Shown piece after piece: positions 2,185-27,068 of a stretch of DNA of 64,000 bases. Within the stretch, counting starts at the first letter, position 1. Each line of letters opens with the position of its first letter. The notes below the pieces were generated by a model. The model was not told the DNA's origin, did not search any database, and was given only the letters and a program-made list of their open reading frames with translations. A program made the translations under genes and the position numbers. The stretch is taken from the sequence record NC_061441.1; one strand, written 5' to 3'.

Positions 2185-2550
2185 ATGGAACAAATTGAAC
2201 TGTTACGCGTAGTGAAAGAGATCCTCAGCGAATACGGCAAAGTTGAGTTTCTGGCGCAAGGTCATGTTGGTGTGAACACCGAGCACCGTGCAACCTATGA
2301 AACGTTAATCACTGTGACCTCTGATAGCGACACAACTTTCCCTGAAGCAGATTTCGGCGCTAAGATTGCGGCGCAGATTGACGAGTATCGTGTGGTTGGA
2401 TTCAAGCGCACCTACAACGAGCAGACCCGAGAGTTTGTGCTGCAACTGACCGACCCAATATTCACCTACCGTGACCCATTGGTGTGTCCAGCAAACGGCA
2501 AAACTCTGTACTCGGTTTCCGTAGGTTTCCCGTTCGTGTCCACCAATTAA
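2185..2550 (+). CDS. Hypothetical protein
   Basis: 121 aa ORF, GAGGA RBS. Confidence 0.75.
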   Translation: MEQIELLRVVKEILSEYGKVEFLAQGHVGVNTEHRATYETLITVTSDSDTTFPEADFGAKIAAQIDEYRVVGFKRTYNEQTREFVLQLTDPIFTYRDPLVCPANGKTLYSVSVGFPFVSTN

Positions 2551-2560
2551 TCTGTAAATA
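2549..2560 (+). promoter_or_regulatory. AATCTGTAAATA motif (candidate phage-sigma promoter)
   Basis: Exact 12-mer also at 7088(-), 13982 and 20233; here upstream of the ATG at 2597. Confidence 0.6.
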
Positions 2561-2596
2561 TCCTTACTTGGTTAACGCGCGTGTGGGATATTGAAA

Positions 2597-3280
2597 ATGG
2601 CGAAGTTGAAGAAAGAACGATCGGTCAAAGTCAGTGCTAAAAAGACTGTTGCCGTAAAAACAAAGAAAGCAAAAGCTAAGGCTATTCCTGTTCGTGTCGT
2701 TCAGGACACACGGCCTATTATCAATTGCCCTGAGATGGAAGAGAAGCCTCAACCATTTCGTTTTCGTGGTCAGTGCCCGATAGTGACCTGTCAGTATTGC
2801 ACACGCGAAACTCCGACAGGCTGCATGGCGCTTGACCGCAAAGAATCGGCCGACCGTTCAATCTCTAACAAGGAGATCGCTTATTATAAACGTGGCCTCT
2901 TTCCTGAACTTAAAGACATGGATCAGAAGCAACTGGACAGTACGATTCGACGCGCACAAAATCGTACCCGCAATGCTATCTGCCTTACTATGTTTATTGC
3001 CGGGATTGATGATTCTGATTGCGATAGGTCTTTTCAATATGTAGAAGGCCGCAGTCGTCTGGTCGATCAGGTACATAACTATCTGGTCCAAACGTTCAAT
3101 GATTACCGTCCGTGGATGCTCGCATACCTCGACGACGAAAAACGATTCGGCGACATGGTGGGTAAAATAACCAATTCCGACTTTAATTTAAAAGACGCAT
3201 TGCGTTTGACTCCTCGCAAGTATCAAATGTTCTGCCAGTCGCTACAAAATCTTAAACAATCTGGAGACTCTCATGAGTAA
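2597..3280 (+). CDS. Hypothetical protein, Lys-rich N-terminus and Cys cluster
   Basis: ORF track 2591..3280; ATG at 2597; CPIVTCQYC...C possible Zn site. Confidence 0.75.
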   Translation: MAKLKKERSVKVSAKKTVAVKTKKAKAKAIPVRVVQDTRPIINCPEMEEKPQPFRFRGQCPIVTCQYCTRETPTGCMALDRKESADRSISNKEIAYYKRGLFPELKDMDQKQLDSTIRRAQNRTRNAICLTMFIAGIDDSDCDRSFQYVEGRSRLVDQVHNYLVQTFNDYRPWMLAYLDDEKRFGDMVGKITNSDFNLKDALRLTPRKYQMFCQSLQNLKQSGDSHE

Positions 3281-5045
3281 CTTTATCTCCCTCGATCAGT
3301 ATCGCGCGATCATTCGTCGCAACGTCCTGAAAGAGCCTCAGATGCTGGTGGTCAATCAGACGCAGCCACTGGGTCAAATCTTTTTCCAATGCCCCGGCGA
3401 TAACTTCCAGATGAAGGATATCATTGTCCCGCCATCTCGTAACGCTATCGACCTGACGCAGCAAGCACCGCTGGAAAATCTGCTGGCCTGTAGCCAACTG
3501 AAAGCGCTGCTGCAAACGCAACGTCTGGTGTTGTTGAACCCAGAAGAAATGCCAAACCCCGGTGAAGGCATTCAGATGCCTCAGCTTTCTGTTCCACCAG
3601 TTGCTGGTGCCGTGTCGGTTGACGGCGTAACTATTCCTAACGCTACCGTGATTGTCGAGCAAAATGGTAACGTCTGGACTGGTACTTCAAACGGCAGCGG
3701 TGTGTTCACTGTTGACGTATCTGGCCTGCAGGAAGGTGTGTTCTCAATCACCATTACTGCTGATGGTTTCGTGCCTGCTCGTTACAACTTCAATGCTGGT
3801 GCGCAACCTCTGCAACCAATGCCTGCTCCTACAGTACACGCTGTCTTTAAAGAGACAACTGTATCGGGAACCACGGTTGCGAATGCTAATATCATCGTAT
3901 CGGTGCAGAGCAAAGAGTTTACAGGTCAGGCTGATGATCAGGGTGCGTTTAGCATTAACGTTGACCCACTGCCGTTTGACATTATTCACCTGACGATCAC
4001 TGCTGCTGGTTATCTGGATAACGTTGTCAATCACATGGTTGACTCTGTTCCTGGTCTGGCTCAGATTAACAGCGCACCGTTCCTGTCTACTGCGCTGGCA
4101 GGTAAGGCAAGTCCAGAAGCTGAAATCGAAATCATCATCACCGGCCAGTCCAATCAGTTCGTTACTGCTGCTGCAAACGGCGACTGGACTGCTGTTGTTG
4201 GTGCTGTTAAAGGTGAAGTCTCTATTCGTGTGCTTGAGAAAGACGGCTACGACGAAGCGACTGCTACCATGCAGCCTACCAAACTGCCTGCTCCTGTACT
4301 GGCTGTCGATAACGCTGATAGCATCGGCGAGAATCAAACTGTCTTCGGTGGACCTATCACTGGTCTGAGTGCAGAAGCGAATGACGTAGCGGTAACGCTG
4401 ACTGTTCAGGCTGGTCTGTACGAAGGTACTGTTGACCTGCAATCAAGCCACTGGTCTGTGACTGGTGTTGATGCAAAAGCGGGTGTGGGTTCTGTAGGTG
4501 TTGTGAATCTGACGTCGGCCTTCTATGAAGATGCCTCAACGTCGTTCAACATTCTGGAAGAGTTCGCGCAGCCTACTCTGCAACAAGCGCAAGATGGGCA
4601 GACTGCGGTAGTTGGTGATACTGTGGCTAGCGCTACAGTTAAGATCACAATGAACGGCGAAACCAAAACTGCGTCTTCAAACCCGCAGGGTGCGTTCTCT
4701 GTTGATGGATTTACTAACGTTGTGCCTGGCCAGATTCGTATCGAACTGTCACGCAACGGTTACCTGCCTGCGGACTTCAATGTCGCTCTGGCAGTGCAGG
4801 CTCTCGGCCAGCTTGATGCAAATCTGGCTGTCGGTGAAGACACAGTTGCTGGACAAGCGACTCCTGGTTCTACTGTCACCTTGACGCAGGGTAGCGTTGT
4901 TGGTGATGCTGTGGCTGACGCGTCAACGGGTGACTTCATCATCACTCTGTCTGGACCGCTGGTAGAAGGTACACCAGTAGAGTTGAAAGTACAACACGCG
5001 GGCTATGTTGATTACGTTGAAACGTTAACTGTTTCTGCACCTTAA
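3273..5045 (+). CDS. Ig-like/carboxypeptidase-regulatory-like repeat protein, probable virion decoration protein
   Basis: About six ~80-aa beta-rich repeats (V-x-G-x-T...A-T-V...G-x-F...GY) after a ~90-aa N-terminal module. Confidence 0.7.
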   Translation: MSNFISLDQYRAIIRRNVLKEPQMLVVNQTQPLGQIFFQCPGDNFQMKDIIVPPSRNAIDLTQQAPLENLLACSQLKALLQTQRLVLLNPEEMPNPGEGIQMPQLSVPPVAGAVSVDGVTIPNATVIVEQNGNVWTGTSNGSGVFTVDVSGLQEGVFSITITADGFVPARYNFNAGAQPLQPMPAPTVHAVFKETTVSGTTVANANIIVSVQSKEFTGQADDQGAFSINVDPLPFDIIHLTITAAGYLDNVVNHMVDSVPGLAQINSAPFLSTALAGKASPEAEIEIIITGQSNQFVTAAANGDWTAVVGAVKGEVSIRVLEKDGYDEATATMQPTKLPAPVLAVDNADSIGENQTVFGGPITGLSAEANDVAVTLTVQAGLYEGTVDLQSSHWSVTGVDAKAGVGSVGVVNLTSAFYEDASTSFNILEEFAQPTLQQAQDGQTAVVGDTVASATVKITMNGETKTASSNPQGAFSVDGFTNVVPGQIRIELSRNGYLPADFNVALAVQALGQLDANLAVGEDTVAGQATPGSTVTLTQGSVVGDAVADASTGDFIITLSGPLVEGTPVELKVQHAGYVDYVETLTVSAP

Positions 5046-5054
5046 TCTTACCTG

Positions 5055-5070
5055 AGGGGCTTCGGCCCCT
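5055..5070 (+). terminator. Hairpin AGGGGC-TTCG-GCCCCT (weak U-tract)
   Basis: Perfect 6-bp stem with UUCG loop just after the stop at 5045. Confidence 0.55.
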
Positions 5071-5097
5071 TAATGAAATGCAATTCGGAGATTTACC

Positions 5098-5751
5098 ATG
5101 TCAGATAAAGCAAGCACCAAAGTACAACCCATTACGCTCACCACTTACAACGAGCGTTACGGCCAGAACCCTGTCGCACCTATGTACGTTGCTAACCGTA
5201 CCGAGCCTCGCGGCAACGTAATGTTCAGCGCACAGGACGACATGGGACAGCCTGTTCCAGTTCTCGTACCTGCTACCTTCATCCCGATCGACCTGACTCA
5301 GCAAGCTACCAAAGAGAGCCTGTTGAAATCTACGCACCTGCGCCGCGCACTGCAACGAAACCAGCTGGTCATCATCGACACTGAAAGCGCTGAAAACTAT
5401 CTGCGTACCAGTTCTCTGGCTAAAGCGGAAATGCGTAACCTGAACAAAATGGGTAGCGCAATCGCTGCTGATCTGGGCGAAGAAGGCGGTGAGCTGGCTG
5501 CTATCGATCTGGGCGGCGCGTCTAAACGTAACGTGCAGTTTGAAGGCGGTACTCAGTATTCTGAAAACCAGTTTGTTAACGCATTCATCGTTCGTGCTGC
5601 CGAAGACAGCGAAGAATCTGACGACAACCTGCAACGTGAATTCCTGTCTCGCGGTATCAACCTGCCAGTCTCTGAGCTGAACATTCTGCGTGAGCACATC
5701 ACTCGCCCAGCAATCGTTGAGCTGATCATGCAGGCTCTGGAAGACGCGTAA
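5098..5751 (+). CDS. Hypothetical protein sharing its N-terminal module with 3273..5045
   Basis: 217 aa; IDLTQQA block shared with the upstream gene. Confidence 0.8.
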   Translation: MSDKASTKVQPITLTTYNERYGQNPVAPMYVANRTEPRGNVMFSAQDDMGQPVPVLVPATFIPIDLTQQATKESLLKSTHLRRALQRNQLVIIDTESAENYLRTSSLAKAEMRNLNKMGSAIAADLGEEGGELAAIDLGGASKRNVQFEGGTQYSENQFVNAFIVRAAEDSEESDDNLQREFLSRGINLPVSELNILREHITRPAIVELIMQALEDA

Positions 5752-5767
5752 TTTTAGTGCTACAGAC

Positions 5768-5808
5768 AAAAAAAAATGGGAGGCCCCGAAAGGAGTCTCC
5801 CATTTTTG
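5768..5808. terminator. Bidirectional intrinsic terminator
   Basis: A-run + ATGGGAGGC..GAAA..GTCTCCCAT + T-run between convergent genes. Confidence 0.85.
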
Positions 5809-5988
5809 TTACTGCTGCTTTTCCGCTTGCTGTCTTAAACGATCAAGGAATGCCGAACTTTCACCTGGCTTAATGTGTCTCGGTTCAACTTTGATGCGAT
5901 TGATCATACGCTGCATACGACGAATGCTTCGGCTACGCAGGTCTTCAATCGAGTGCTGCTTAAACTGCTTTCTGAATTTCAGAGCCAT
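5809..5988 (-). CDS. Small basic protein, 59 aa (MALKFRKQFKQHS...EKQQ), absent from the ORF track
   Basis: ATG two bases after the primase stop, AAGGA RBS, TAA at 5809-5811 just before the terminator. Confidence 0.7.
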   Translation of the reverse strand: MALKFRKQFKQHSIEDLRSRSIRRMQRMINRIKVEPRHIKPGESSAFLDRLRQQAEKQQ

Positions 5989-5989
5989 C

Positions 5990-7048
5990 TTACTTTCCTT
6001 TCTGTGTTATCGCTTTAGGTCTATTCCAGCCTAACGCTTTTGCTGGCATGATACACTTCTTACCGTGTATGTCTTTCAGCGTCATGCGAACTTCTTTGAT
6101 CAAGTTCATCGGTGCATTGTCTGGGTCGAGCTTAATCAGCTTACCATCTTCATCATACTCACGCGGTAGCTTGAAGTGTTTGACAGGTACTGGAGAGTTC
6201 TTTTCAAACTCCGCCTTTATTTTATTGCGCAGTAGCTTCCCGCCACCATCGTTATCAGTCATCGTGTAGACAACACTCACGCCTAACATCTCAAGCGTTC
6301 TGCGTTTCGTTTCCCCGAACTGCTCTGCACCGAGTACAGCCAACGCAGGAATCCCATATGACAACAACGCCAGAGCATCACGAGGACCTTCGACGAGAAC
6401 AACATAGCGCAACTTGTATTTCTTCAAACACTCTTTAACTAACGGCAGAGGGAACAGGCCTTTCTCTTTCGCCCAATCACCATTCGAGTTCACATAGCTT
6501 GTGCCGTTCATCTGTTTGCGCAGATACGCAGCGATACCACCTATGTATTTCGTACCGTGCTTACATGGAAAGAAGCAGACGTTACTGCCTGTACGTTGCG
6601 CGTTAAGCAAACCCCCAGCAGCCTGAACGAGCGCTCCTGGATATCCACGCCATTCAACATCGAGAGGCCATTCCATGTAGCTGTTACGTCCGAGTGCTTT
6701 CATCAATAAACCGACAGAAGCATACGTGCCAATCTTATTGCCTATCTGCTCATACGTTTTGAACAACGCACTTAGGCTGTTTGTGTTAGCGTCTTTCAGC
6801 GCCCAGCCTTTGATCTCTTGCAGCTTCGCGTGTGCTGCTAACTTGTTCCAGCCACCCTTCTCACCGCAACCGAAGCAGTGAAAGAATCCTAAAGGAATCT
6901 CCATCCCAACAGAAGTGTAAATACCACAACTAGGCGTCTTATCACTATGAAACGGACAGCACACCATAACAGTGTCACCGTTATATTTCTTGTCGCCTGG
7001 CAATTTGCCAATCTCGTCAAGTATTATCTGATGAACGTCTTCTGCCAT
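5990..7048 (-). CDS. DNA primase (DnaG type)
   Basis: CHC2 zinc finger CCPFHSDKTPSC...HCFGC; TOPRIM VVLVEGPRDAL and TDNDGGG. Confidence 0.92.
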   Translation of the reverse strand: MAEDVHQIILDEIGKLPGDKKYNGDTVMVCCPFHSDKTPSCGIYTSVGMEIPLGFFHCFGCGEKGGWNKLAAHAKLQEIKGWALKDANTNSLSALFKTYEQIGNKIGTYASVGLLMKALGRNSYMEWPLDVEWRGYPGALVQAAGGLLNAQRTGSNVCFFPCKHGTKYIGGIAAYLRKQMNGTSYVNSNGDWAKEKGLFPLPLVKECLKKYKLRYVVLVEGPRDALALLSYGIPALAVLGAEQFGETKRRTLEMLGVSVVYTMTDNDGGGKLLRNKIKAEFEKNSPVPVKHFKLPREYDEDGKLIKLDPDNAPMNLIKEVRMTLKDIHGKKCIMPAKALGWNRPKAITQKGK

Positions 7049-7087
7049 ACCATCCTCTATTCGTATCGTAATTTCAGCATATACGCA

Positions 7088-7099
7088 TATTTACAGATT
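7088..7099 (-). promoter_or_regulatory. AATCTGTAAATA motif on the minus strand, upstream of primase
   Basis: Reverse complement of tatttacagatt; oriented with the primase gene, 40 nt upstream. Confidence 0.6.
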
Positions 7100-7112
7100 A
7101 AGGACAGCCAGA

Positions 7113-7448
7113 ATGGGTAATCCACATCGCTATGTGCATACGGCACAGCGCCGCTTCTATGGCAAACACTGGGTTAGCTTTTGTGATCTGATTCGTGTTG
7201 AACCGCAAAAGTACGGCGCATTCAATAGTCAGGATGATATGATCGGTCTGACGCTGCCGAAAGATTTTGATGTGGCCGAGGCAACAAAGAGCCTGCGCCA
7301 GATTTATGTGACGACTGACGAGAACGTAGAAGTACGCTGCTACCTGTTTGGTACTCGCTACTATAAGTTCGTATTCTTCGAGCAAACAATTGCCGTGAGC
7401 GAGGACACTGATGAGAACGTTAGCAAATATACCCGCCCGAGTGAATGA
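7113..7448 (+). CDS. Hypothetical protein
   Basis: 111 aa, AAGGA RBS. Confidence 0.7.
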   Translation: MGNPHRYVHTAQRRFYGKHWVSFCDLIRVEPQKYGAFNSQDDMIGLTLPKDFDVAEATKSLRQIYVTTDENVEVRCYLFGTRYYKFVFFEQTIAVSEDTDENVSKYTRPSE

Positions 7449-8496
7449 TACTCGCGGCCTGTCTCGCATCGGAAAAATGATTGATGCGGCTCTTGACGTA
7501 AAGAACCAAGAGAAGCGTTGGCCGAAGAAGCGCGTCAGTCCGTCCATGTTTCCTATCTGCCCGATTCAAGAAACAGCGAAACTGATTTACCAGAAGCACA
7601 ATAACTGCATGACCGGAGAGTCTGGTACGTTGCTGAACATCTTTGCGAAAGCAGGGACAGGGATGCACGAATCATTGCAGAATGCTCTGGGACACAGTGG
7701 TCAGATGGTTGGTCACTGGAAATGTACGAATGAAAAATGCGTCGAGTACCCGAAAACCAAAGGCAAGACAGTCGATGGTGAGTACGTCAAAGGCAAATAC
7801 ACGCGAACTCGAAGCACGAACAATCGTTGTCCGTCGTGCGATCAGCCTATGGCTTATGCAGAACTCAAAGTCCTGTACAAGTCACTCAAGGGTTACGTCG
7901 ATGGACTGATTGATAATCTGGACGGCACGTACAGTCTGATAGATTTGAAATCGACTATGGTGACCAAAGCTGCTGACGGAACCTTCTTCGTTAAGTATCA
8001 CCGCTTCCAGATCGCGACCTACGCATACCTGCTGAAAAAGCGTTACGGCTATAACATCGTGGACTATACCCTCGTCTACGTGCCACGCGACAACCCGAAG
8101 AAGTTTGTCGAGAAGACCTTTGTGTTTGACGAGGCAGAGTCGAAACGCGCCAAAGACTTTATGATGGAACAAATACGCGCATGGGATGCTGCGGTAAAAT
8201 CGGCTCGCACTGGCGACCTGCTGCCTGCTATTAAACGGAAGCCGTGCAAAAGCGCCGAGTATTATTGGGACGAGTTCCATGGATATGATACATGCCCTTT
8301 TGTTGACTATTGCTTTATTCAATCACACATGATTGACTTCATGAAGAAGTTAGAGCAGCGAATCATGGCCAACCCCGATCTTACTTATATGGAAATCGTA
8401 AGCACAGGTCGGAAAACTCAACAACAAGGTCTGCTGCCGGACAAGAAGCCAAAGTCTCAACGTCCGAAGCATATCGTAAAAACATTTGAGCTATGA
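7411..8496 (+). CDS. Cas4-like PD-(D/E)XK exonuclease (start uncertain: 7441 GTG or 7477 ATG)
   Basis: SPSMFPIC, GTGMHE, GYVDGLID, LIDLKS, QIATY and C-terminal PC...CPFVDYC (split 4Fe-4S-type Cys); extra C...CPSC insert. Confidence 0.8.
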   Translation: MRTLANIPARVNDTRGLSRIGKMIDAALDVKNQEKRWPKKRVSPSMFPICPIQETAKLIYQKHNNCMTGESGTLLNIFAKAGTGMHESLQNALGHSGQMVGHWKCTNEKCVEYPKTKGKTVDGEYVKGKYTRTRSTNNRCPSCDQPMAYAELKVLYKSLKGYVDGLIDNLDGTYSLIDLKSTMVTKAADGTFFVKYHRFQIATYAYLLKKRYGYNIVDYTLVYVPRDNPKKFVEKTFVFDEAESKRAKDFMMEQIRAWDAAVKSARTGDLLPAIKRKPCKSAEYYWDEFHGYDTCPFVDYCFIQSHMIDFMKKLEQRIMANPDLTYMEIVSTGRKTQQQGLLPDKKPKSQRPKHIVKTFEL

Positions 8497-8903
8497 GCAT
8501 ACAAAAAGATTATGAACGTTCAATGCGCCGACTTAAGGAGTCTGTCTATCGCAAAGAAAAACTCGGTTACGTTGCGCCGAGATGCGTTGATGTTGTTCTC
8601 TCAAAAGTGAGACCGCCTGAACAGGTAGCGTCGAGGAAGTATCTGGTCATGCTGATGCTATTCAGTCAGACCTGCGAACAACTCGGTGCTACCTTGACGA
8701 TGCGTGAACAACTCGTGGTCAAGATGGCTATCCTTAGTCGGAAGCACCCAACGCCAGACATTCAGCGCAAAATTCGCAGACTGGATGAACTGGTAATAAG
8801 TCAGGACAAAAACATTGAGGGTCAGCTTTTGTTGCTTGAGTATCGAGCGCAGATTCTGATTGATATCCTCGACGGTAAAGAACCCAACTCCAGATATACT
8901 TGA
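8493..8903 (+). CDS. Hypothetical protein
   Basis: 136 aa, ATGA overlap with the previous stop. Confidence 0.7.
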   Translation: MSIQKDYERSMRRLKESVYRKEKLGYVAPRCVDVVLSKVRPPEQVASRKYLVMLMLFSQTCEQLGATLTMREQLVVKMAILSRKHPTPDIQRKIRRLDELVISQDKNIEGQLLLLEYRAQILIDILDGKEPNSRYT

Positions 8904-8910
8904 GGTACTC

Positions 8911-9390
8911 ATGGAAATTTATGTAAGCCTGAGTCAGGATAGCACGGACAAGAACCGTAGCAAAGTCACAAGCCCAGAATCCACCACTGGTCGTGTTGAC
9001 GTGTCCGAATATGCTTCGCTTGAAAAGAAGCTGCGCCTGACCGAAGAGGCGAAAGACAAAGAGAAGTTAGCTCAAAAGGCTGGTGGCGGTGATTCTGTAA
9101 AGGGTAAGAAAGGCGCTAAAAAAGATAGCGCAAAGCCCAAGGATGACGACACTGATACGGACGAAGACCCTACATTAGATGATGAAGGTGACGCAGATGA
9201 TTCAGATGACGCTTCCGATACAGATGGAGACGACTCCGATGGAGACTCTAAAGGTAAGAAGTCACGAAAGAAACCTGACGACTCTGGAGCAGCGGACGAT
9301 GCGGACGCAGAAGACCCTGACGCAGACGAATCCGAAGGTGATGACGGGGATGCAGATGCTGAAAGCACTGATGACGAGGACATCGAATAG
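8911..9390 (+). CDS. Disordered Lys/Asp-rich protein (MEIYVSLSQD...)
   Basis: GAGG RBS before ATG 8911; poly-acidic C-terminal half. Confidence 0.75.
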   Translation: MEIYVSLSQDSTDKNRSKVTSPESTTGRVDVSEYASLEKKLRLTEEAKDKEKLAQKAGGGDSVKGKKGAKKDSAKPKDDDTDTDEDPTLDDEGDADDSDDASDTDGDDSDGDSKGKKSRKKPDDSGAADDADAEDPDADESEGDDGDADAESTDDEDIE

Positions 9391-9886
9391 CGATCCCGTC
9401 GATGTGCCGAAGACGCATGATGCAATGATCGAAGTGCTGATTGCTATTCGGTACATGTGCACCAAGCGCATGATCTTCCCTGTCGTGATTGCTAACATTG
9501 AACGGCGTAATGATTATCTGGTGATGAACAAACTCACCTTTAGCATGAAGCCTGGTAAATTCCTGACTGCTATTCAGGATAGCAACTGCCCTGTAAACGT
9601 GTGCTGGCTCATGCGAGCCTTCACACGCACCGCTCTGCATTTCGGTCTGATGCCTGTGATTGCAGACAGAAGTGGCGACTTTCAACCTTTAGTTAGTCGC
9701 TACTTCACGCAGGACGATCCAGATTTTGCTTACCGTCGTCATTACGACATTCGTTACATGAGCCAGCTCACTGATATCCGTAAGCCGCGCCTGTATCTGC
9801 TTAATGGAGTTAATTATGGCGTACAAGTCACTCGCCAAGAAACCGAAGAAGTCGAAAGCCGCCAAAGAGGCAGAGACTCGGAATAA
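9371..9886 (+). CDS. Hypothetical protein (start 9371 or 9425)
   Basis: Globular-looking part of track ORF 9179..9886. Confidence 0.6.
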   Translation: MTRTSNSDPVDVPKTHDAMIEVLIAIRYMCTKRMIFPVVIANIERRNDYLVMNKLTFSMKPGKFLTAIQDSNCPVNVCWLMRAFTRTALHFGLMPVIADRSGDFQPLVSRYFTQDDPDFAYRRHYDIRYMSQLTDIRKPRLYLLNGVNYGVQVTRQETEEVESRQRGRDSE

Positions 9887-10472
9887 GGCACACAAGCAAG
9901 CGCGTCGTGGTAAACTTGCTCAGGCAGTGAAAACAATCAGCACTGCCCTCAAGAAATCTCGACGCATGACGAAAGGTGAGAAACGTGCAATTCAGTTGCA
10001 GCCGTTCAAACCCCAAGTCGTACCGCAGCCGCCTAAAACTCCGCTCATGGAGAAAGGTCTTTCGTTGAACGCGCTGATTAAGTCTACGCCGCGTCTGATG
10101 AAAGAGAACGCTATGGAATGTTATGTCAATGGCGTGAAGCGCGGCAAGACGAACAAAGGCCTGCCGATGATTATGGCAAACGTTCGTCACAAAGATCCAC
10201 TGCGTCCTAATAAAACAGTGCGCATTCACAAGCCGATGATCATCGGTCTGGATGATCCGTACAAGCCTATTTCAAAACAAAAGCGTGTGCTGGTCAGTTG
10301 TCCCTGCGAGAACTTTGTGTTCATGTGGGAGTATGCGAACACCGAACATGGTTGTGCGCGAATTATTTACGGTAACGGCGAGCCACCAGACTTCACTAAC
10401 CCCGGTCACGCACCTGGTCTGTGTAAGCACCTGATGGCCTTAGCTGATCAAGTCAAACGAAACGGAGATTAA
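9816..10472 (+). CDS. SWIM zinc-finger protein with basic N-terminus
   Basis: VSCPCENF...GLCKHL fits CxC-n-CxH; GGAG RBS. Confidence 0.75.
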   Translation: MAYKSLAKKPKKSKAAKEAETRNKAHKQARRGKLAQAVKTISTALKKSRRMTKGEKRAIQLQPFKPQVVPQPPKTPLMEKGLSLNALIKSTPRLMKENAMECYVNGVKRGKTNKGLPMIMANVRHKDPLRPNKTVRIHKPMIIGLDDPYKPISKQKRVLVSCPCENFVFMWEYANTEHGCARIIYGNGEPPDFTNPGHAPGLCKHLMALADQVKRNGD

Positions 10473-10477
10473 TCCGA

Positions 10478-10759
10478 ATGTTCTTTAACAATCCGGCACC
10501 AGGCGTTATCCCTAACTATCCGATTGTGCATTCAATCAATGAGATGCACCGTCGTGTGGCTGAACTCAACGGCGAACTGATCGCTGCTGGCTGCACTGTC
10601 GTAGAGTCGTGCGGCGAGATGCTGATCGAGGTCCCTAAGGGCGCATCTGCGAAAGTTGACGATATCATCCAACGTCATCAGGATATGTTCAAAGGTCCTG
10701 TCCTCAGCCGCCCGGGTCGCTTGCAGATTGGAGGCGAAGATGCAGAAGCAGAAGTTTAA
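10478..10759 (+). CDS. Hypothetical protein
   Basis: 93 aa ORF in operon. Confidence 0.65.
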   Translation: MFFNNPAPGVIPNYPIVHSINEMHRRVAELNGELIAAGCTVVESCGEMLIEVPKGASAKVDDIIQRHQDMFKGPVLSRPGRLQIGGEDAEAEV

Positions 10760-11171: not shown

Positions 11172-11386
11172 TGGCCTGTTCGGGTTGTGGCCGTCGTAGC
11201 TCTCGCATTAGTTACAACGGCAGTTCTGCTCCTCAGACAGTAATCGAAGAGGACGATACGTTAAGCGCTGCGCGTTTAACACCTCATGGCTGGGTACGCA
11301 CCTGCGTTAAGTGTGGTGCCGTTTCCGAGCCTTCACCCTTTGCAGAAAACATTGAAAAACCTTGTGACTGCAAAACAGACGAGTGA
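11171..11386 (+). CDS. Small Cys-rich protein
   Basis: CSGC, CVKC and CDC motifs; TAATG overlap. Confidence 0.65.
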   Translation: MACSGCGRRSSRISYNGSSAPQTVIEEDDTLSAARLTPHGWVRTCVKCGAVSEPSPFAENIEKPCDCKTDE

Positions 11387-13981: not shown

Positions 13982-13993
13982 AATCTGTAAATA
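13982..13993 (+). promoter_or_regulatory. AATCTGTAAATA motif upstream of the sigma gene
   Basis: Exact intergenic copy. Confidence 0.6.
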
Positions 13994-14025: not shown

Positions 14026-15063
14026 ATGAACAATAAGTCGAATCTCACGGGCGGTCAGATAGAAAGCGTCATGGACACCATGTTGCATGACTGCCTCCGT
14101 GAGATTGTTGAGAACACGGATATCTTCGATATCCAATTGACCTACTTGTTGGGTCTGGTTACGTCAAATAAAAAGCGAAAGCCATACAACGCAGAAACGC
14201 GTGAACGAGCTATCAGCCTTCTGATTAAAGCGCTCTCTGTACCGCGTGACCAGAAGATGGTTTTCATTCAGGAACTTAAAATGGAGCGTAACTTCATTTA
14301 TGTCTTCCTGGAAAATGTAATTAAGCGGTACTACTCGGTGTATGTCGATTTGTACCGTGCATTCATCACGACGCAAGATCCAATCAAGCGCGTGGCGTAT
14401 TCAAAACGACTGGACGTGTATGTGAAGATGTTTGGTGCTGAGTCTCGCTCCAAGCTGTTTGTGGCGTTGTGTCGTTTGAATGACCTACTGCCGCAGTTCA
14501 TGGAATACTTCCACTCGGTAGTTGCTGACTTCTATCGTCTGTGCAGCAAGCAGACCAAATTCTATGTTGATACCAATCGTGGTAAACTCTACGACAGCAA
14601 AGACGTGCGCCAGAACTTCCTGCGTAACGTTATCATTGCAATCAACAAGTATGACTCATCGCGTGGTGCGATAGTCAGTTATACGAAGTGGTGGATTCTG
14701 AACGCTCAAACCTGTAGTAGCAGCGAGCACGAATACGGCATCGCCTACACTATTCCCCAGACTCAACGTAAGAAACTGGCGACAGGTGAAGATACCACTT
14801 CTCTAAATTTCTCGGTAAGTCTCGATACTCCAGCCAATGAATCTGATGAAGGTGCGGACGCGTCCCTACATCAAAAGGTGAGTGACCATCATCACCTGGA
14901 AGATCACGTTGATAGTGAAAGACGTACCGAAAAACTGAGACTGCTTATTAAGCGCGTTGACCCTCTCGGTGTTGCTCGACTAACGATGGACGTTGGCGAG
15001 GAGTTCGATAAGTTTGAACTCGACCTCATGCGTAAACATATGCAAGCTCAAGGGCTAGCCTAA
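14026..15063 (+). CDS. Phage RNA polymerase sigma70-like factor
   Basis: Region-2-like DVRQNF...IIAINKYDSSRG..VSYTKWWILNA; SLDTP region-3-like motif. Confidence 0.75.
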   Translation: MNNKSNLTGGQIESVMDTMLHDCLREIVENTDIFDIQLTYLLGLVTSNKKRKPYNAETRERAISLLIKALSVPRDQKMVFIQELKMERNFIYVFLENVIKRYYSVYVDLYRAFITTQDPIKRVAYSKRLDVYVKMFGAESRSKLFVALCRLNDLLPQFMEYFHSVVADFYRLCSKQTKFYVDTNRGKLYDSKDVRQNFLRNVIIAINKYDSSRGAIVSYTKWWILNAQTCSSSEHEYGIAYTIPQTQRKKLATGEDTTSLNFSVSLDTPANESDEGADASLHQKVSDHHHLEDHVDSERRTEKLRLLIKRVDPLGVARLTMDVGEEFDKFELDLMRKHMQAQGLA

Positions 15064-15074
15064 AACTGTAAACA
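15063..15074 (+). promoter_or_regulatory. Variant motif AAACTGTAAACA upstream of the SSB gene
   Basis: 2 mismatches to AATCTGTAAATA, intergenic. Confidence 0.45.
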
Positions 15075-16420: not shown

Positions 16421-16439
16421 CAATCTGGACTATCCCACA

Positions 16440-18971
16440 ATGGCGAAAACGAACAACAAGGCTGAGAAGAAGGCCGAGAAGAAAGCTAAAGTCAAAGCTC
16501 TGAAAAGCGGAGAAAAGGCAGTAGCTTCTGATGATATCGGCGGCGTTGAAATTCAAGGCTTCGACCTCGCAAGTTTGATGGACGATGTGCTTGACGGCAT
16601 CGAAAAGAAAACGAAAGTAAGTTCGCAGGATGCAGCGCGACACGCACCGCGTATCTCAACAGGCTGTCTGGCGCTTGACATGTATTTGTCTGGCGGTATC
16701 GTACCTGGCGGTTGGTACACATTCAGCGGCGGTGAGCAGTCATGTAAGTCAACAATGACCATGAGCATTATGGCGAGCCTGATTCGTCTGAAATACTCTG
16801 GCATTAGCGTAGTGTTCGACTACGAAGGTTCAACCGATGCCGAGTACGTTGCTGGTCAGTTGAAAACGTTCGGCGTTAAGGTCGACCCGAAAACTATCTT
16901 CGGTGTGCGTGACGATAAAGACGGTAGCTGGATCGTTAAGCCTAAGATCCGTTACTACGCACCAGACAACGGTGAGCGCTTCTTCGATTATATGTCGATG
17001 CTGCGTCGTCGTCTGCCTGACAAAATCGTTGAGAAAGACGGCACCGCGTATTACATCTTTGAGAACAACAAAGAGAACGCGAAGAAGCTGGCAGGCAAGT
17101 ACGATAAGAAATGGTTCAGCCGTAACAACCAGTTCAAAGTACCTGCGCCAGACGGCCACATGCAGGCGATGGTTATCGTTGACTCCTATCCTGCGATGAT
17201 GCCAGATCAGGTCGATGACGATGACGGCTCGAAAGCAATGGCGCTGCAAGCGCGTATGTTCTCTGACGGCATCAAACGTTTCCGTGGCGGTATGCGTCGT
17301 AAGATGATGACTATCGTTGGCGTTAACCAGTTGCGTCAGAAGCCAGCAGTAATGTTCGGCAGCCCGGAGTATGAGCCTGGTGGTGATGCGTTGAAGTTCT
17401 ATTGCTTCGACCGTGACACTCTGATTCGTACTGACCACGGCGTATTGACTGCACCGCAGATTAAAGCGCTGATGGACGAAGGCAAAGAAGTTGCCGTTGA
17501 GTCGTTCGATGGTTATCAGAAAATCAACGGCGCATGGCTTGTCAATGACGCTCCGTTCCCGTTCGAACTGAATGCTGGTGGTCATGTGTATGTTGGCTCG
17601 GCCGAACATCGCCAGTTCACGTTCATGCACGATCTGACTGCCGAAGGTACTCCAGTTCTGCGTCCTGAATGGAACACGCTGAATCAACTGGCGCAGTACC
17701 CAGAGCAGAAAGGTCAGTACGCTGGTCTGCGTGTACCACCAGTTAAGGAACTGAAAGAGAATGTTCCTGACGCCTTCGATGAAGCCTCACAACTGGTAAG
17801 CAATCTGCTTGGAAACTGCGACCCTGTTAGCAAGCAACTGCCGCTGGTGACTCACGGTGATACCACCTACGCTGCAAACTGTCTGTTCATCGACACTGTG
17901 GGCGAAGACACCGACACTGGTTCGTTCTCGTTCTGGGTAGAGAAGTTACTGGCCATCGGCGTATTTGCTTACGCTGACGAAAGCGGTATCTGGATTCCAG
18001 GTCTGAACAAACACGAACTGGAAGCGGCTGTAGCGCAGGACGAACTCGGTGCGTTTGCTGGTATCAGTTTTGAAGCGACCTGTCGTCAACGTCAGACTCA
18101 AATGCTGACCGTGATTGTCGATCACTTCCCTGAGCTGGTACGTTACGTTCTCGACTATCAGTTGCAGACGGGCGAAGACAAAATCTACCTGGCGCCTGAG
18201 AACGACTTCGCACAAGCGCTTGACCTGATTCTGCACAAAGAGATCGCTGGTTACGACGACTACTATGACCTGCTGATGTTCCAGCTGGCGTATGTCGATG
18301 ACTGGTACAACTTCGATTCCTCAATTCTGCCTGTGCCGTTTACGCTTCGTGCGCTCAACGAACAGCGTGAGTTCTGGGACGTGAACGTTGAAGAAACGTC
18401 GGTAGTAATCACCAACGGCTTCGTCAGTCACAACAGCGACGTGCGTGTGCGACTGGCTTCTCGTGCGGTACCAGAAGGCTGGCCGAAACTGAAAGATGCT
18501 CCTGGCATCGTCGGTGAGAAGTCGGTAACAGTTGAAGGAGGTACTGACCGCTATCGCTTCATCGCTGCTAAGACCATCAAGAACAAGATGGGCGGCATCC
18601 CTAACCAGCAGACGTGGTTACGTTTGTGGGAAGCTGACGGTAACGGTGAAGCTCGCGGTTTCGACCCAGTGTTCGATACGTGGCACTACCTGAAAACTCT
18701 GGGTCTGGTCAATGGTAGCCGTAAGTCGTTCAAGCTGAAAGCTCCGTGCCCGCTCGCATCTGATGTTAAGATGGATTGGGATGACTTCCGTACACTCATC
18801 AACGGCAGCAAAGAACAAGTTGTTGGCGTGTGTAAGAAACTGAAAGTCAAACCTGCGGGCCTGCGTCTGTGGTGCTTCAAGTTCGTTCAGTCCACTAAGG
18901 GCAACGAAATGTTGAAGAACGCAATCAGTAAGTCTGCCAAGAAGTCTGATGACGACGACGGCGACGAGTAA
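16440..18971 (+). CDS. recA: RecA/UvsX recombinase containing an intein
   Basis: ISTGCLALD..LSGG, Walker A GGEQSCKST, VIVDS, VNQLRQ, PGGDALKFY|SDVR, KTIKNK; 843 aa, 499 aa after splicing. Confidence 0.92.
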   Translation: MAKTNNKAEKKAEKKAKVKALKSGEKAVASDDIGGVEIQGFDLASLMDDVLDGIEKKTKVSSQDAARHAPRISTGCLALDMYLSGGIVPGGWYTFSGGEQSCKSTMTMSIMASLIRLKYSGISVVFDYEGSTDAEYVAGQLKTFGVKVDPKTIFGVRDDKDGSWIVKPKIRYYAPDNGERFFDYMSMLRRRLPDKIVEKDGTAYYIFENNKENAKKLAGKYDKKWFSRNNQFKVPAPDGHMQAMVIVDSYPAMMPDQVDDDDGSKAMALQARMFSDGIKRFRGGMRRKMMTIVGVNQLRQKPAVMFGSPEYEPGGDALKFYCFDRDTLIRTDHGVLTAPQIKALMDEGKEVAVESFDGYQKINGAWLVNDAPFPFELNAGGHVYVGSAEHRQFTFMHDLTAEGTPVLRPEWNTLNQLAQYPEQKGQYAGLRVPPVKELKENVPDAFDEASQLVSNLLGNCDPVSKQLPLVTHGDTTYAANCLFIDTVGEDTDTGSFSFWVEKLLAIGVFAYADESGIWIPGLNKHELEAAVAQDELGAFAGISFEATCRQRQTQMLTVIVDHFPELVRYVLDYQLQTGEDKIYLAPENDFAQALDLILHKEIAGYDDYYDLLMFQLAYVDDWYNFDSSILPVPFTLRALNEQREFWDVNVEETSVVITNGFVSHNSDVRVRLASRAVPEGWPKLKDAPGIVGEKSVTVEGGTDRYRFIAAKTIKNKMGGIPNQQTWLRLWEADGNGEARGFDPVFDTWHYLKTLGLVNGSRKSFKLKAPCPLASDVKMDWDDFRTLINGSKEQVVGVCKKLKVKPAGLRLWCFKFVQSTKGNEMLKNAISKSAKKSDDDDGDE
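17403..18434 (+). mobile_element. Intein (344 aa) in recA
   Basis: Starts with Cys (CFDRDTLI) after ALKFY; block B SAEH; block F FWDVNV; ends SHN followed by Ser; extein motif KFY-SDVR is restored on removal. Confidence 0.92.
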
Positions 18972-18977
18972 TAAATA

Positions 18978-19003
18978 GGCGGGCTTCGGCTCGCCCTTTC
19001 TTT
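18978..19003 (+). terminator. Intrinsic terminator
   Basis: GGCGGGC-TTCG-GCTCGCC-CTTTCTTT. Confidence 0.75.
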
Positions 19004-19013
19004 GGAGAAAGAA

Positions 19014-19442
19014 ATGCGCACTCAAATCTATACGGCTGATATCGTCAATCTGGAAACAGTGGTCGTTGACGAAGAAGGTCAAGAGACACGCAGTCCGACA
19101 ATCGTTCCTAATCTCGAAGGCGAACGTGATCTGACTGTTAGCACTCTCGGTACTATCATGGCTACCGTGACCGCTGAACCAAATCCTGACGCTCGCATGA
19201 TCGTTCTGGTGTCACGCGCTCTGTTCCCTGCTTTCGCAGACCCTGAAGGTGACCTGTTCGATATCTTCGATCCGATCGAACGTGTTGCTGATGTTGTTGC
19301 TGGAAACGTCGGCAGCATTCTCGGTATGCAGGTAGTAATCAACGATAAGTCCGACGACAACGTTCTGGCTATCGCTGATGTTCTTGATACCGAAGCTGGC
19401 GTTACTATTCGCACCTTCGGCGCTGCGCTCGTTCGCGCGTAA
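19014..19442 (+). CDS. Hypothetical acidic protein
   Basis: GGAG RBS, 142 aa. Confidence 0.75.
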   Translation: MRTQIYTADIVNLETVVVDEEGQETRSPTIVPNLEGERDLTVSTLGTIMATVTAEPNPDARMIVLVSRALFPAFADPEGDLFDIFDPIERVADVVAGNVGSILGMQVVINDKSDDNVLAIADVLDTEAGVTIRTFGAALVRA

Positions 19443-19448
19443 GTAAAC

Positions 19449-19476
19449 TTGTGCGGGATAATGCTTTCCCGCACAA
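19449..19476. other. Perfect 10-bp inverted repeat (hairpin without U-tract)
   Basis: TTGTGCGGGA-N8-TCCCGCACAA. Confidence 0.7.
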
Positions 19477-19483
19477 TCCCTCT

Positions 19484-19536
19484 CTCGATAGGCAATACGC
19501 CACGAGAAAACAAACCACTCGATAGGCAATACGCCA
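19484..19536 (+). repeat. 19-bp perfect direct repeat CTCGATAGGCAATACGCCA x2
   Basis: Copies at 19484-19502 and 19518-19536; the second abuts the GGAG RBS of 19547. Confidence 0.9.
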
Positions 19537-19546
19537 GGAGTAATGT

Positions 19547-20248
19547 ATGAAAAAGATTCAACACGTAACACTTCCGACCGATGCACTCAACGGACTCATT
19601 CATGGCTATTACCACCATAGCAAAACCACTGATGAATTTTGCAGATCGTTGATCTATATTGACGTTACCGACCGCAGCGCCTCAGATGCGCTGTATGCTA
19701 TATTGAAACGTGAGCCGACAAAAGGCATTGTCCCTATGGGATATGATTGCTTACGAGAAGCACGTGGGCACACTGCTCCAGCACAACTCGCAATCGTATT
19801 GTCCAACAACCTGTTGCATATAGATAATACGAAGATGGCTGGAGGCGTACAGGCCATCTTTAACGCTCTGGCCAGAACCACGCACACCAACGATACTCAA
19901 ATAACTGTGTACGGCGAGCCTGGAGTAAGTAAGATTCTCAACATAATGCGCGACATTCAATATAAAGAATATATTAACGCGCCTGAATCCGACATTGTGC
20001 TTGGCGACTTTAACCTTGAGTCGAACATGACTATAGACCATTTCGTTCACATGGCTATCGATCCTAAGTTCGAAGAAGCTATCCGCAATTCTCCTGCCAC
20101 AGAATTTAAACTGGGCAGCAGTTTCATGTTCATGCACCCAGATGAATTGACTAAGGTTGTACGCATGGTCCGCCGTTGCAGTAAAATCTGCATCATGCAC
20201 CCTGACATTCATCGCTATTACTTTGAGAACGTAATCTGTAAATACTAA
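19547..20248 (+). CDS. Hypothetical protein, paralogue of 21398..22165
   Basis: 233 aa; collinear motifs with 21398..22165. Confidence 0.75.
   Translation: MKKIQHVTLPTDALNGLIHGYYHHSKTTDEFCRSLIYIDVTDRSASDALYAILKREPTKGIVPMGYDCLREARGHTAPAQLAIVLSNNLLHIDNTKMAGGVQAIFNALARTTHTNDTQITVYGEPGVSKILNIMRDIQYKEYINAPESDIVLGDFNLESNMTIDHFVHMAIDPKFEEAIRNSPATEFKLGSSFMFMHPDELTKVVRMVRRCSKICIMHPDIHRYYFENVICKY
20233..20244 (+). promoter_or_regulatory. AATCTGTAAATA motif at the end of 19547..20248
   Basis: Exact copy upstream of the AcrVA2-like gene. Confidence 0.5.
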
Positions 20249-20296
20249 TCACCAAACCGAACACATTGCTGTGTGTAGTCTAGCCCGACTTGGGCA

Positions 20297-20327
20297 GGGG
20301 AGAGCCGGATGGCCTCCCCATTTTTTT
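20297..20327 (+). terminator. Intrinsic terminator in the leader of the AcrVA2-like gene
   Basis: GGGGAG-A-GCC-GGAT-GGC-CTCCCC-A-T7. Confidence 0.8.
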
Positions 20328-20350
20328 ATCTACACACTGCGGAGAACAGT

Positions 20351-21352
20351 ATGTCTAAAACGAAGTCAACTCCACAGACCTTCCTCGACCTATTCTTAAA
20401 GGATGTTAAGCTCTTTCTGCCAAGGTTCGACAAAGGACTGGACGCGTACTTATTGAAGTGCAAAGGCAAGCCGGGTCCTTATGGCGTATCGCTTCATCAA
20501 TACATGAAGTGGCTAAATCCTGTAGCGCGACTTCCTGCCAACGCAAGCGAAGTGTCTATCATCACATCAGGCTACCTGCATTACTTTTGGCAACTCGCTA
20601 AACCTAACTTTGTGTTGGAGCCTGTGCTTGTCAATCATTTGGTTGAGTCTGTGTTGCCTGACGAACTCCCGGCTGAGATTCTTCAACGTCTGCCTTACTG
20701 GAGTCAGTGGATTACGTTGCCTCTGCATCTGGTAAGCAAAGACAATATTCTGGATCTGGACTTCGATGGTGCTTTCGTTGGGTATACATCAATCGACAAC
20801 AGACCTGCGCTTGTCCTTGCGGCACCGTTTGTTTCCAACAATCAAAACATGCGCTCGAACGACTTCACACCGTTCGTTACATCGCATGTATTTCTTGATG
20901 CTCCTGTACGTCCAGAGTTTTTGGTAAGGAACAGCCACATACTCAACGTTGATGCAGACGCAATGAGCAAAGAAGCATACACCGTATTGATAATGAACAT
21001 TCACCACTTCCTGGTGAAAGTGATCAACTGTGTCATGTATATCTGCTCGCAACAGGAAGCACTGTATCAGGAAGGTCATTCTCAACCTAAGCCGCAGCGT
21101 CTAGGTAAGAGCTATCGCATCACGCCACCGAAAGATGATCGCATGATCACGGTGGGCGCCGAGATGACCAAGATACTCAAAGACTTCGAAGCAGAAGTCG
21201 AATCGTGTGCTCGCGCTTTCAATGGGCGTAAGCCGCATATACGAAAAGCGCACTACCACCACTTCTGGACAGGACCGAAAGTAGGAGTTCGTACCCTTGT
21301 CTGTAAGTGGTTGCCACCAAGTATTGTTCGCGGCACCATCGTAGAGCAATAA
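20351..21352 (+). CDS. AcrVA2/FinQ-family protein
   Basis: LPDELPAEILQRLPYW and C-terminal RKPHIRKAHYHHFWTGP...KWLPP match recalled AcrVA2 (LPDDTPTSIFLNLPDW; RPHIRRGHWHGYWQG...RWQP); GGAG RBS. Confidence 0.75.
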   Translation: MSKTKSTPQTFLDLFLKDVKLFLPRFDKGLDAYLLKCKGKPGPYGVSLHQYMKWLNPVARLPANASEVSIITSGYLHYFWQLAKPNFVLEPVLVNHLVESVLPDELPAEILQRLPYWSQWITLPLHLVSKDNILDLDFDGAFVGYTSIDNRPALVLAAPFVSNNQNMRSNDFTPFVTSHVFLDAPVRPEFLVRNSHILNVDADAMSKEAYTVLIMNIHHFLVKVINCVMYICSQQEALYQEGHSQPKPQRLGKSYRITPPKDDRMITVGAEMTKILKDFEAEVESCARAFNGRKPHIRKAHYHHFWTGPKVGVRTLVCKWLPPSIVRGTIVEQ

Positions 21353-22165: not shown

Positions 22166-22196
22166 GATTATTCTTAGCCTGCTCTCTAATTTCAAT

Positions 22197-22546: not shown

Positions 22547-22597
22547 CTATGCTAATTTTTAACGTCATTACACACCAACCGACTTCGGGGTATCACT

Positions 22598-26307: not shown

Positions 26308-26355
26308 ACACACCTTGCCTCGCATACCGCGGGGCTTTTCTATTTGGAGAATGCT

Positions 26356-26616
26356 ATGTACCACTATACGCGTGAAGAACTGGAAGAAATGAACTGCATC
26401 GAACTGGACCAGCTTGCAAACGAGCGCGGTCTGCTGGAAGATAAAGACGATGACGACGATCTGGACAATGACCTGCTCATCGGCATGATTCTTGACGACC
26501 AGAACGAACAGCAACTGGCAGACGAAGAAGCCGAAGATAAGCAACGCGCCGAAGATGATCGCGACCCACGTATTAATCGCCGTGACGGCCAAGACGGTTC
26601 AGACGACTATTGCTGA
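26356..26616 (+). CDS. Small acidic protein with Rho_N/HeH-like module
   Basis: LEEMNCIELDQLANERGL...DLLIGMIL. Confidence 0.65.
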   Translation: MYHYTREELEEMNCIELDQLANERGLLEDKDDDDDLDNDLLIGMILDDQNEQQLADEEAEDKQRAEDDRDPRINRRDGQDGSDDYC

Positions 26617-26673
26617 TTAAGTAAACCAAGAGGCTGCCAGCGCTGGTGGCCTCACTCACAAGAAGGAGCAATA

Positions 26674-27021
26674 ATGAAGCGCAAAGTAATATTGATAGAC
26701 ACGGCAGAGTTTCACAACCAACCCATCTCGTTTCCATCGATCATTGATTTTGACGGCATAGACACGGTGGTGTTTGTTGTGAAGTCAAATGGTGAGCACG
26801 GAGGCATTGATTATCTTGGTGCGTACTGTGCAACACAAATGACAGTTGGCTATACGAAAGCGCCTATGGCGCAGACGTTGAACATCGACGAATATGGCGT
26901 TGTGCCTCTCGAAGATGATATGAAGGCCAAGCTACTCCACACCAACCAGTACGTTGACGAAGTGCCTGAGCAACATCAAAGCATCTACAGCACGAAGACT
27001 GAAATCCTCTTCGCTGAGTAA
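26674..27021 (+). CDS. Hypothetical protein
   Basis: AAGGAG RBS, 115 aa. Confidence 0.75.
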   Translation: MKRKVILIDTAEFHNQPISFPSIIDFDGIDTVVFVVKSNGEHGGIDYLGAYCATQMTVGYTKAPMAQTLNIDEYGVVPLEDDMKAKLLHTNQYVDEVPEQHQSIYSTKTEILFAE

Positions 27022-27025
27022 CCAC

Positions 27026-27054
27026 AAGGGCTGCCATTATTGGTGGCCCTTTTT
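27026..27054 (+). terminator. Intrinsic terminator; related hairpin at 26630-26653
   Basis: AAGGGCTGCCA-TTAT-TGGTGGCCCTT-TTT. Confidence 0.8.
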
Positions 27055-27056
27055 CA

Positions 27057-27068
27057 TTTCTGTAAATA
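27057..27068 (+). promoter_or_regulatory. Variant motif TTTCTGTAAATA upstream of 27099
   Basis: Core CTGTAAATA, intergenic. Confidence 0.5.

Follow-up and report, generated by a model that had tools for sequence, protein, structure and literature searches.

A stretch of 64,000 nucleotides (nt) from the genome of Erwinia phage pEa_SNUABM_16 (NC_061441.1, bases 186001–250000; window base 1 is genome base 186001), referred to here as the window, carries a short repeated box upstream of several genes, one of which encodes the sigma-like protein gp245. The question raised by this locus is whether the box is a promoter and, if so, which protein reads it. The phage is an Alexandravirus jumbo phage with a genome of 266,838 bp, and window positions 13000–21000 match its record at 100% identity by megablast. 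An earlier note on this DNA proposed that the box, AATCTGTAAATA (core CTGTAAA; named M1 here), is a -35-less middle/late promoter read by gp245 in the manner of T4 gp55. Judging from its sequence and placement, M1 very probably serves as a phage promoter that lacks a -35 and belongs to the middle class, that of DNA metabolism. gp245 would then be a product of this class that more likely reads a second box, (C)TAATTT (M2), and a second sigma-like candidate, gp343, is tentatively preferred as the reader of M1. As a whole, the explanation of M1 as a -35-less promoter class for middle genes, gp245 included, is judged probable.

Distribution of the M1 box

An exact and mismatch search of the window recovers all of the four exact 12-mers and two variants that the earlier note had listed (Table 1). 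Only 0.01 exact copies are expected, and at least four were reached in 0 of 100 shuffles of the window. Each box has the orientation of the gene that follows and lies 30–106 nt upstream of the annotated start codon, in line with the first estimate of about 30–110 nt, and the copy that was said to be flipped before the minus-strand primase gene is indeed an exact match on the minus strand. A match with two mismatches at 19047 stands inside a gene and looks like chance. Two further matches with two mismatches, at 28928 and 43154, belong to another element upstream of early promoters, since the early promoters share a second upstream element that is described below.

Enrichment and orientation, which the note had left to be checked, hold genome-wide as well, as counted on the whole annotated record of pEa_SNUABM_16. 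AATCTGTAAATA occurs in 14 exact copies (0.02–0.03 expected under uniform or Markov models) and the core CTGTAAATA in 29 (1–2 expected under the same models). All 29 core copies share the strand of the gene that follows them; an automated score of 28/29 arose from the primase copy, which was misplaced by the script's block border. The non-coding 5% of the genome is touched by 15 of the 29 copies (p ~4e-11), about half fall in the last part of the upstream open reading frame (ORF), and TCTGTAAA is the commonest 8-mer among the intergenic regions of the genome. For most copies the end of the box is 17–42 nt from the annotated start codon, and six copies are located directly downstream of a terminator hairpin and T run, with few bases between.

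Anatomy of the box

Alignment of the 29 sites provides the consensus A-A-T-C-T-G-T-A-A-A-T-A. Relative to the box, positions -40 to -5 all stay below 0.3 bit in information content, and for this reason no -35 element is assigned. Seven nt past the last box base, an A is found in 18 of the 29 sites. If TAAATA occupies -12 to -7, this A would be +1. Transcription probably starts at the A about 7 nt past M1 and produces 5' leaders of roughly 10–35 nt. M1 is predicted to be the single recognition element of a phage-specific -35-less class that switches on the middle genes. The reading of the box as a -35-less promoter is upheld by the lack of anything conserved at -35, by the copies that follow terminators and by orthologous sites that are kept while their flanks diverge. 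Host-type promoters are depleted in window positions 1–20000, with 10 found against 19 expected.

Several known elements were compared with the box and rejected. A LexA half-site (CTGT) would require an ACAG partner, and no conserved partner is located downstream. The sigma54, sigma28 and sigma32 consensus sequences fit the box poorly by inspection. A host extended -10 promoter does not fit either, as the TG of M1 abuts TAAATA and the final base is A; true TGnTATAAT sites form a separate class in this genome.

Conservation in related phages

The box is kept before the sigma, single-stranded DNA-binding protein (SSB) and primase genes of phages Y3, AD1, Yoloswag, JA29 and Yersinia fHe-Yen9-02 while the flanks have diverged, and the flanks of the JA29 and fHe-Yen9-02 sites are unalignable. 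Upstream of the sigma gene, all five phages carry (A/T)CTGTAAA(T/G)A, the last two with unrelated flanks. The site before the primase gene is kept in Y3, AD1, Yoloswag and JA29, and the site before the SSB gene is kept in all enterobacterial relatives and in Lu11. The M1 site before gp227 has an orthologous copy in Yoloswag, before its gp218. The form CTGTAAAGA, seen in the possible weak variant at 44496, stands before the Yoloswag sigma gene.

Copies of CTGTAAATA number 33 in Lu11, 29 in Yoloswag, 24 in fHe-Yen9-02 and 19 in JA29, compared to 2–5 for the reversed word. HRDY3 carries 51 copies of ACTGTAAA versus 7 for the control. PaBG has no exact copy and uses the variant AAACTGT(A/G)AA, with GCTAATTT also present. 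No enrichment of the box was found in GR7B, PhiXhv-12 and Peetri, the phages whose sigma is about 25% identical to gp245.

The motif itself is not new, as the box is already predicted in Pseudomonas phage Lu11, a distant relative whose sigma is 37% identical to gp245. The Lu11 GenBank record (JQ768459) labels the box aaaaCTGTAAATAcatAGTA "putative middle/late promoter", a label that is itself a prediction. Both phages belong to one group that includes Lu11, PaBG and the Dickeya and Erwinia jumbo phages, and they share the core aaaaCTGTAAATA, the orientation, the intergenic placement, the site before the SSB gene and the sigma family. The features of the Lu11-group box are found in pEa_SNUABM_16 as the core CTGTAAA(T/C)A after A/T, 29 copies with an AAT or AAA flank, co-orientation, placement in intergenic regions or at gene ends, and orthologous sites in five to six relatives. 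The Lu11 box differs in its AAAA flank (AAT in pEa_SNUABM_16) and in the GTA that follows it by about 4 nt. Directly before the Lu11 sigma gene there is no box, and the pEa_SNUABM_16 record, unlike that of Lu11, annotates no promoters. The PaBG paper describes a sigma70-like gene and a possible second sigma, and no promoters (PMC7412058).

Predicted promoter classes and their genes

M1 precedes genes for a DNA methyltransferase, an NAD ligase, a DNA polymerase piece, a clamp loader, an HNH endonuclease, the primase, the sigma gp245 and SSB/UvsX, and it also precedes the topoisomerase-linked operon gp340–344. M2 was found by intergenic word counts: all 22 copies of CTAATTT are co-oriented with genes, and G-T-C is enriched about 7 nt downstream. 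This box precedes the portal operon and genes for PAAR, tail and baseplate, head-tail connector and endolysin proteins, together with other late-looking genes. A third class is composed of host-type TGnTATAAT promoters before small genes of unknown function at 210–260 kb of the genome. The predicted programme would consist of early host-type TGnTATAAT promoters, middle M1 promoters and late (C)TAATTT promoters followed by GTC about 7 nt downstream. M1 is assigned to the middle rather than the late class because it precedes replication genes and the virion and lysis genes carry TAATTT. Of the "middle/late" label given earlier, the middle part stands, given the replication genes and gp245 behind the box, and the late part does not.

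The early TGnTATAAT promoters share an upstream element, (A)CTCTGCAAATAAT.GG.C.GAAAT, about 40–50 nt before them, a distance too great for a -35. The element and its promoter are seen together at 28929–28986, 43155–43212 and 46579–46635, and also at 51809–51852 and 55950–55999.

The 64-nt spacer between the primase gene and gp232 (7049–7112) holds M1 and an M2-type GTAATTT on opposite strands, approximately 14 nt apart. A reverse-complement reading of the primase upstream alignment shows (G/C)TAATTT kept before gp232 in Y3, AD1, Yoloswag and JA29. From its sequence, this spacer is a compact divergent pair of putative promoters from two predicted classes.

The sigma-like proteins gp245 and gp343

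The gp245 gene product belongs to PHROG 17569 (E 3e-157). The profile of 39 gp245 homologues matches region 2 of SigA chains (E 1e-3), where it aligns to SigA DLIQEG...KFD...STYATWWIRQA with the Y, W and W of the Y..WW motif kept, and the family shows hardly any variation in its region 2.3/2.4 motif. The AlphaFold2 model of the protein has a predicted local distance difference test (pLDDT) score of 80, and all top Foldseek matches are E. coli sigma70 with probability 1.0. VIA-align places residues 4–234 on sigma70 residues 111–446 (Z 12–15.6, about 223 aligned), and the aligned part is composed of region 1.2, a non-conserved insert resembling the sigma70 NCR, and regions 2.1–2.4. At Z 15.6, 223 residues are aligned, with model residues 3–232 on sigma70 domain 2. 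The remainder consists of a low-confidence, disordered linker (residues 231–287) and a small C-terminal helical domain without a separate match (residues 288–341). gp245 also provides the only Sigma70_r2 match in the genome, at 13.5–16 bits and below the Pfam cut-off, and Pfam Sigma70_r4 gives no match to it. The protein is identified only by family profile, PHROGs and fold searches; plain sequence searches with Pfam at its default threshold, NCBIfam and phmmer against the PDB gave no match. On the strength of the profile and the structural model, gp245 is a sigma70-family protein, seemingly truncated, and the earlier note had already called it a phage sigma factor. A sigma reduced to domain 2 would fit a promoter without a -35, whichever box it reads.

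The gp343 gene product is encoded outside the window (Table 1). Its structural model has a pLDDT of 83.5, and a 145-residue N-terminal extension precedes a part that resembles extracytoplasmic function (ECF) sigma factors. Residues 146–237 resemble ECF sigma domain 2 (sigH; Z 9.5, root-mean-square deviation 2.2, 77 aligned) and residues 291–380 resemble sigma domain 4 (Z 6.2), bearing in mind that a VIA Z under about 13 may reflect no more than a general likeness among helical proteins. Sigma domain 2 accounts for 7 of the 10 top matches for residues 146–237, and full-length alignments to sigma28, AlgU and sigma32 also turn up. Read by eye, the consensus stretches DLTCDIMCKVL and YLRAxLxNRINN resemble ECF regions 2.2 and 2.4. 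An hhalign comparison of the gp245 and gp343 families found no relation. Based on the model, gp343 is a candidate ECF-like sigma.

The gp343 operon lies behind early host-type promoters, TGATATAAT and TGTTACAAT: upstream of it, TGATATAAT stands before the topoisomerase genes and a TTGTAT-N17-TACAAT promoter with TG stands just after the M1 box at genome position 262305. Promoters matching those of the gp343 operon are found in Yoloswag, and PaBG has TTGACT-N17-TACAAT. Homologues of gp343 reach Vibrio phage GR7B, Xanthomonas phage PhiXhv-12 and Pseudomonas phage Peetri, where the gp245-like sigma is only 25% identical.

Which factor reads M1

No RNA polymerase is annotated in the phage genome, so the host core enzyme must be redirected. 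Upstream of gp245 there are only M1, a terminator at 13605–13627 and the M2-type box at 7068, with no early promoter. Autoregulation by gp245 alone could therefore not start, and a cascade in which M1 switches on the sigma gene fits better. In known phage cascades, it is usually the preceding promoter class that transcribes a sigma gene. The positive autoregulation suggested from the copy before the sigma gene is not supported on this ground, and also because the sigma genes of Lu11, PaBG and HRDY3 have no box directly upstream. TAATTT offers the T-12, A-11 and T-7 that are read by sigma70 region 2, and TAAATA ends in A; for this reason gp245 fits better as the reader of the late TAATTT box, which is the more likely assignment. 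For M1 itself, the ECF-like candidate gp343 is preferred, if tentatively. In the proposed sequence of events, gp343 would be made early from host-type promoters and would read CTGTAAATA, thereby turning on its own operon, the genes for replication and gp245, the seemingly truncated sigma70-like protein that in turn would read the late TAATTT box. Such a relay of two sigma factors on host RNA polymerase, with single-box promoters only (gp343 on M1, gp245 on M2), is possible but doubtful in its entirety.

That gp245 reads M1 as a gp55-like factor on a -35-less middle/late promoter, with the copy before its own gene serving autoregulation, is unlikely. The match to sigma70 is restricted to residues 4–234, with regions 3 and 4 seemingly missing, which suits a promoter of this kind, and the box is identical to the T4 late box in 7 of 8 bases. 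In addition, the gp245 family accompanies the box down to 35–40% sigma identity (Lu11, HRDY3 and the PaBG variant), the box is not enriched where the sigma is only 25% identical, and the region 2.3/2.4 motif hardly varies. However, the missing early promoter leaves no source for the first gp245, the genes behind the box are for replication rather than for the virion, the Lu11, PaBG and HRDY3 sigma genes are without an adjacent box, the gp343 family co-occurs equally widely, and TAATTT makes the better region-2 -10 element. The sequence does not single out gp245 as the reader of M1. A comparably low probability is given to the host sigma70 holoenzyme, which an early phage protein would re-aim at M1 after the model of AsiA/MotA in T4, with neither phage sigma-like protein taking part. 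Such a mechanism would agree with a box that is invariant across Erwinia, Yersinia, Dickeya and Pseudomonas hosts, whose sigma70 is highly conserved, and with the many small early genes of unknown function behind host-type promoters. Yet the box is accompanied neither by a hexamer that resembles a -10 and has T at -7 nor by another conserved element, and its TG abuts TAAATA, one base out of the extended -10 register. It is far less probable that the box is not a promoter at all and marks an RNA-processing site, a repressor operator or a replication or packaging signal. Strand-oriented intergenic words can mark RNA cleavage sites too, and approximately half of the copies lie within the end of the upstream ORF. 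Against this, little RNA would remain to be processed at the six copies right after terminator hairpins, the boxes keep a constant distance from the start codon, their sequence is AT-rich, resembles a -10 and is followed by an A about 7 nt on, the genes behind them have no host-type promoter at hand, and 29 dispersed copies misfit an origin or pac site.

Returning to M1 as a middle promoter read by gp343, several observations weigh against this view or parts of it. The would-be -7 position of TAAATA is A and not T. The split between classes is not absolute, as M1 also stands before gp227–229, which carry Ig-like and CarboxypepD_reg domains and are possibly involved in virion decoration, and M2 stands before the gp232–243 nuclease/RNA-ligase operon. 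For gp343, Foldseek lists ECF sigmas first with an E of only 0.2, sequence searches against Pfam, PDB sequences and by profile gave no match, and the middling Z values of a helical protein keep it a sigma candidate only. Across the whole phage group, Lu11 and PaBG included, the two sigma-like families are found together with the two boxes. Their distribution among phages therefore cannot tell which protein reads which box, and simple counts of the short word CTAATTT across phages are uninformative. A search of the accessible literature on the Lu11/PaBG/Alexandra group found no promoter mapping, transcript mapping or tested sigma, and a search of sequencing runs for the phage returned DNA metagenomes only and no RNA.

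Features of the window and neighbouring observations

Table 1. Boxes, predicted promoters and genes discussed in the text (window positions unless marked as genome)
Feature	Position	Strand	Remarks
M2 CTAATTT	1555..1561	-	23 nt before gp224; orthologous copy in Yoloswag
M1 box AATCTGTAAATA	2549..2560	+	Exact; 36 nt before gp227 (operon gp227-229); overlaps gp226 stop codon
Primase gene gp231	5990-7048	-	DnaG-type; CHC2 zinc finger and Toprim domain
M2 GTAATTT	7068..7074	+	Before gp232; divergent from primase M1
M1 box AATCTGTAAATA	7088..7099	-	Exact; 39 nt before primase gp231
M1 box AATCTGTAAATA	13982..13993	+	Exact; 32 nt before sigma gene gp245
gp245	14026..15063	+	345 aa; annotated "RNA polymerase sigma factor", sole one in record
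M1 variant AAACTGTAAACA	15063..15074	+	38 nt before SSB gp246 (SSB-UvsX unit)
M1 box AATCTGTAAATA	20233..20244	+	Exact; at 3' end of gp249, 106 nt before gp250
M2 CTAATTT	22186..22192	+	Before gp252; orthologous copy in Yoloswag
M2 CTAATTT	22552..22558	+	After terminator, 39 nt before gp253; orthologous copy in Yoloswag
M1 variant TTTCTGTAAATA	27057..27068	+	Just after terminator hairpin; 30 nt before gp259
Early host-type extended -10 promoter TGCTATACT	28978..28986	+	Example; others at 34787, 43204, 46627, 51844, 55991
Possible weak M1 variant AGTCTGTAAAGA	44496..44507	+	78 nt before gp297
gp343	genome 265299-266441		Outside window; annotated hypothetical; homologue of PaBG gene 112

The leader between the M1 box and gp250 (20245–20352, plus strand) is predicted to fold (-39 kcal/mol, z -4.07) so that a terminator-like hairpin and U7 are surrounded by a long outer stem (GCUGUGUGUAG...CUACACACUGC). 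Both the hairpin and the word GCTGTGTGTAGTC are found again in Y3, JA29 and fHe-Yen9-02. No Rfam family matches any part of the window, this leader included. The leader may be an attenuator or a small RNA expressed from an M1 promoter.

Just before the Shine-Dalgarno sequence of gp249 there is an exact 19-nt direct repeat, CTCGATAGGCAATACGCCA, at 19484–19502 and 19518–19536 (plus strand). Upstream of the gp249 orthologue, Y3, AD1, Yoloswag, JA29 and fHe-Yen9-02 retain a single copy of CTCGATAG(G/A/C)C(A/C)A, and the repeat may serve as an operator for translation or as a site of protein binding. The UvsX-like recombinase (16440–18971, plus strand) is 843 aa in length, compared to approximately 500 aa in PaBG, Lu11 and JA29 and 1167 aa in Yersinia phage fHe-Yen9-02. 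Its RecA Pfam match is split into two stretches, which suggests inserted element(s) such as an intein or extra domain. Elsewhere in the genome, positions 85184–86018 form an 835-bp stretch without an annotated gene inside the virion-gene block, and two minus-strand M1 boxes (genome 86499 and 86778) are located just upstream of it.

Comparison with known systems

Where a jumbo phage encodes no RNA polymerase, its own sigma factors are believed to redirect that of the host (PMC13282480). The pEa_SNUABM_16 genome presents a compact, testable programme of this kind, with three clearly delimited putative promoter classes and two proteins that resemble sigma factors. If the relay is true, it would define the transcription programme of the entire Lu11/PaBG/Alexandra jumbo-phage group, and gp343 would represent an ECF-like sigma with no need of a -35 element. 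Pairing each box with its reader would make timed gene expression predictable in dozens of jumbo phages that infect Erwinia, Dickeya, Yersinia and Pseudomonas. Several of these phages serve in fire-blight biocontrol cocktails. The pairing would also add orthogonal single-box promoter/sigma pairs for engineering.

Of the host promoters, the extended -10 type (TGnTATAAT) is the most similar in layout, with a TG beside an AT-rich hexamer and no need for a -35. In M1, however, the TG abuts the hexamer and is out of register by one base, and the hexamer ends in A. The late promoters of phage T4 consist of a lone TATAAATA that is read by gp55 with gp33 and the gp45 clamp. M1 shares with it the solitary AT-rich 8-mer near -10, the lack of a -35 and 7 of 8 bases, and the phage likewise encodes a seemingly reduced sigma-family protein. 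In contrast to the T4 box, all 30 M1 copies read TGTAAATA, with G for A at position 2, and exact TATAAATA occurs only twice in the pEa_SNUABM_16 genome. M1 also has an extra AATC extension upstream and stands before replication genes, whereas the T4 box stands before virion genes. gp245, a 345-aa protein with regions 1.2–2.4 and an insert, does not look like an orthologue of gp55, as its match is to sigma70 domain 2 and not to gp55 in particular; T4 gp55 (7d7d_F) turns up only against gp343, at a VIA Z of 6.5. The analogy with T4 late promoters drawn earlier therefore holds for the lone box, the missing -35 and the 7 of 8 bases, and fails for the box sequence and the gene class.

In the Bacillus phage SPO1 cascade, host sigmaA is followed by gp28 and then by gp33/34, at promoters with both a -35 and a -10. 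This cascade is also treated in PMC13401047. The organisation proposed for pEa_SNUABM_16 is similar in its three promoter classes and in a sigma-like protein of one class that would read the next, from gp343 and M1 to gp245 and TAATTT. It differs in that the SPO1 promoters have two elements, whereas both phage classes of pEa_SNUABM_16 carry single boxes, for which gp343 and gp245 are the proposed readers.

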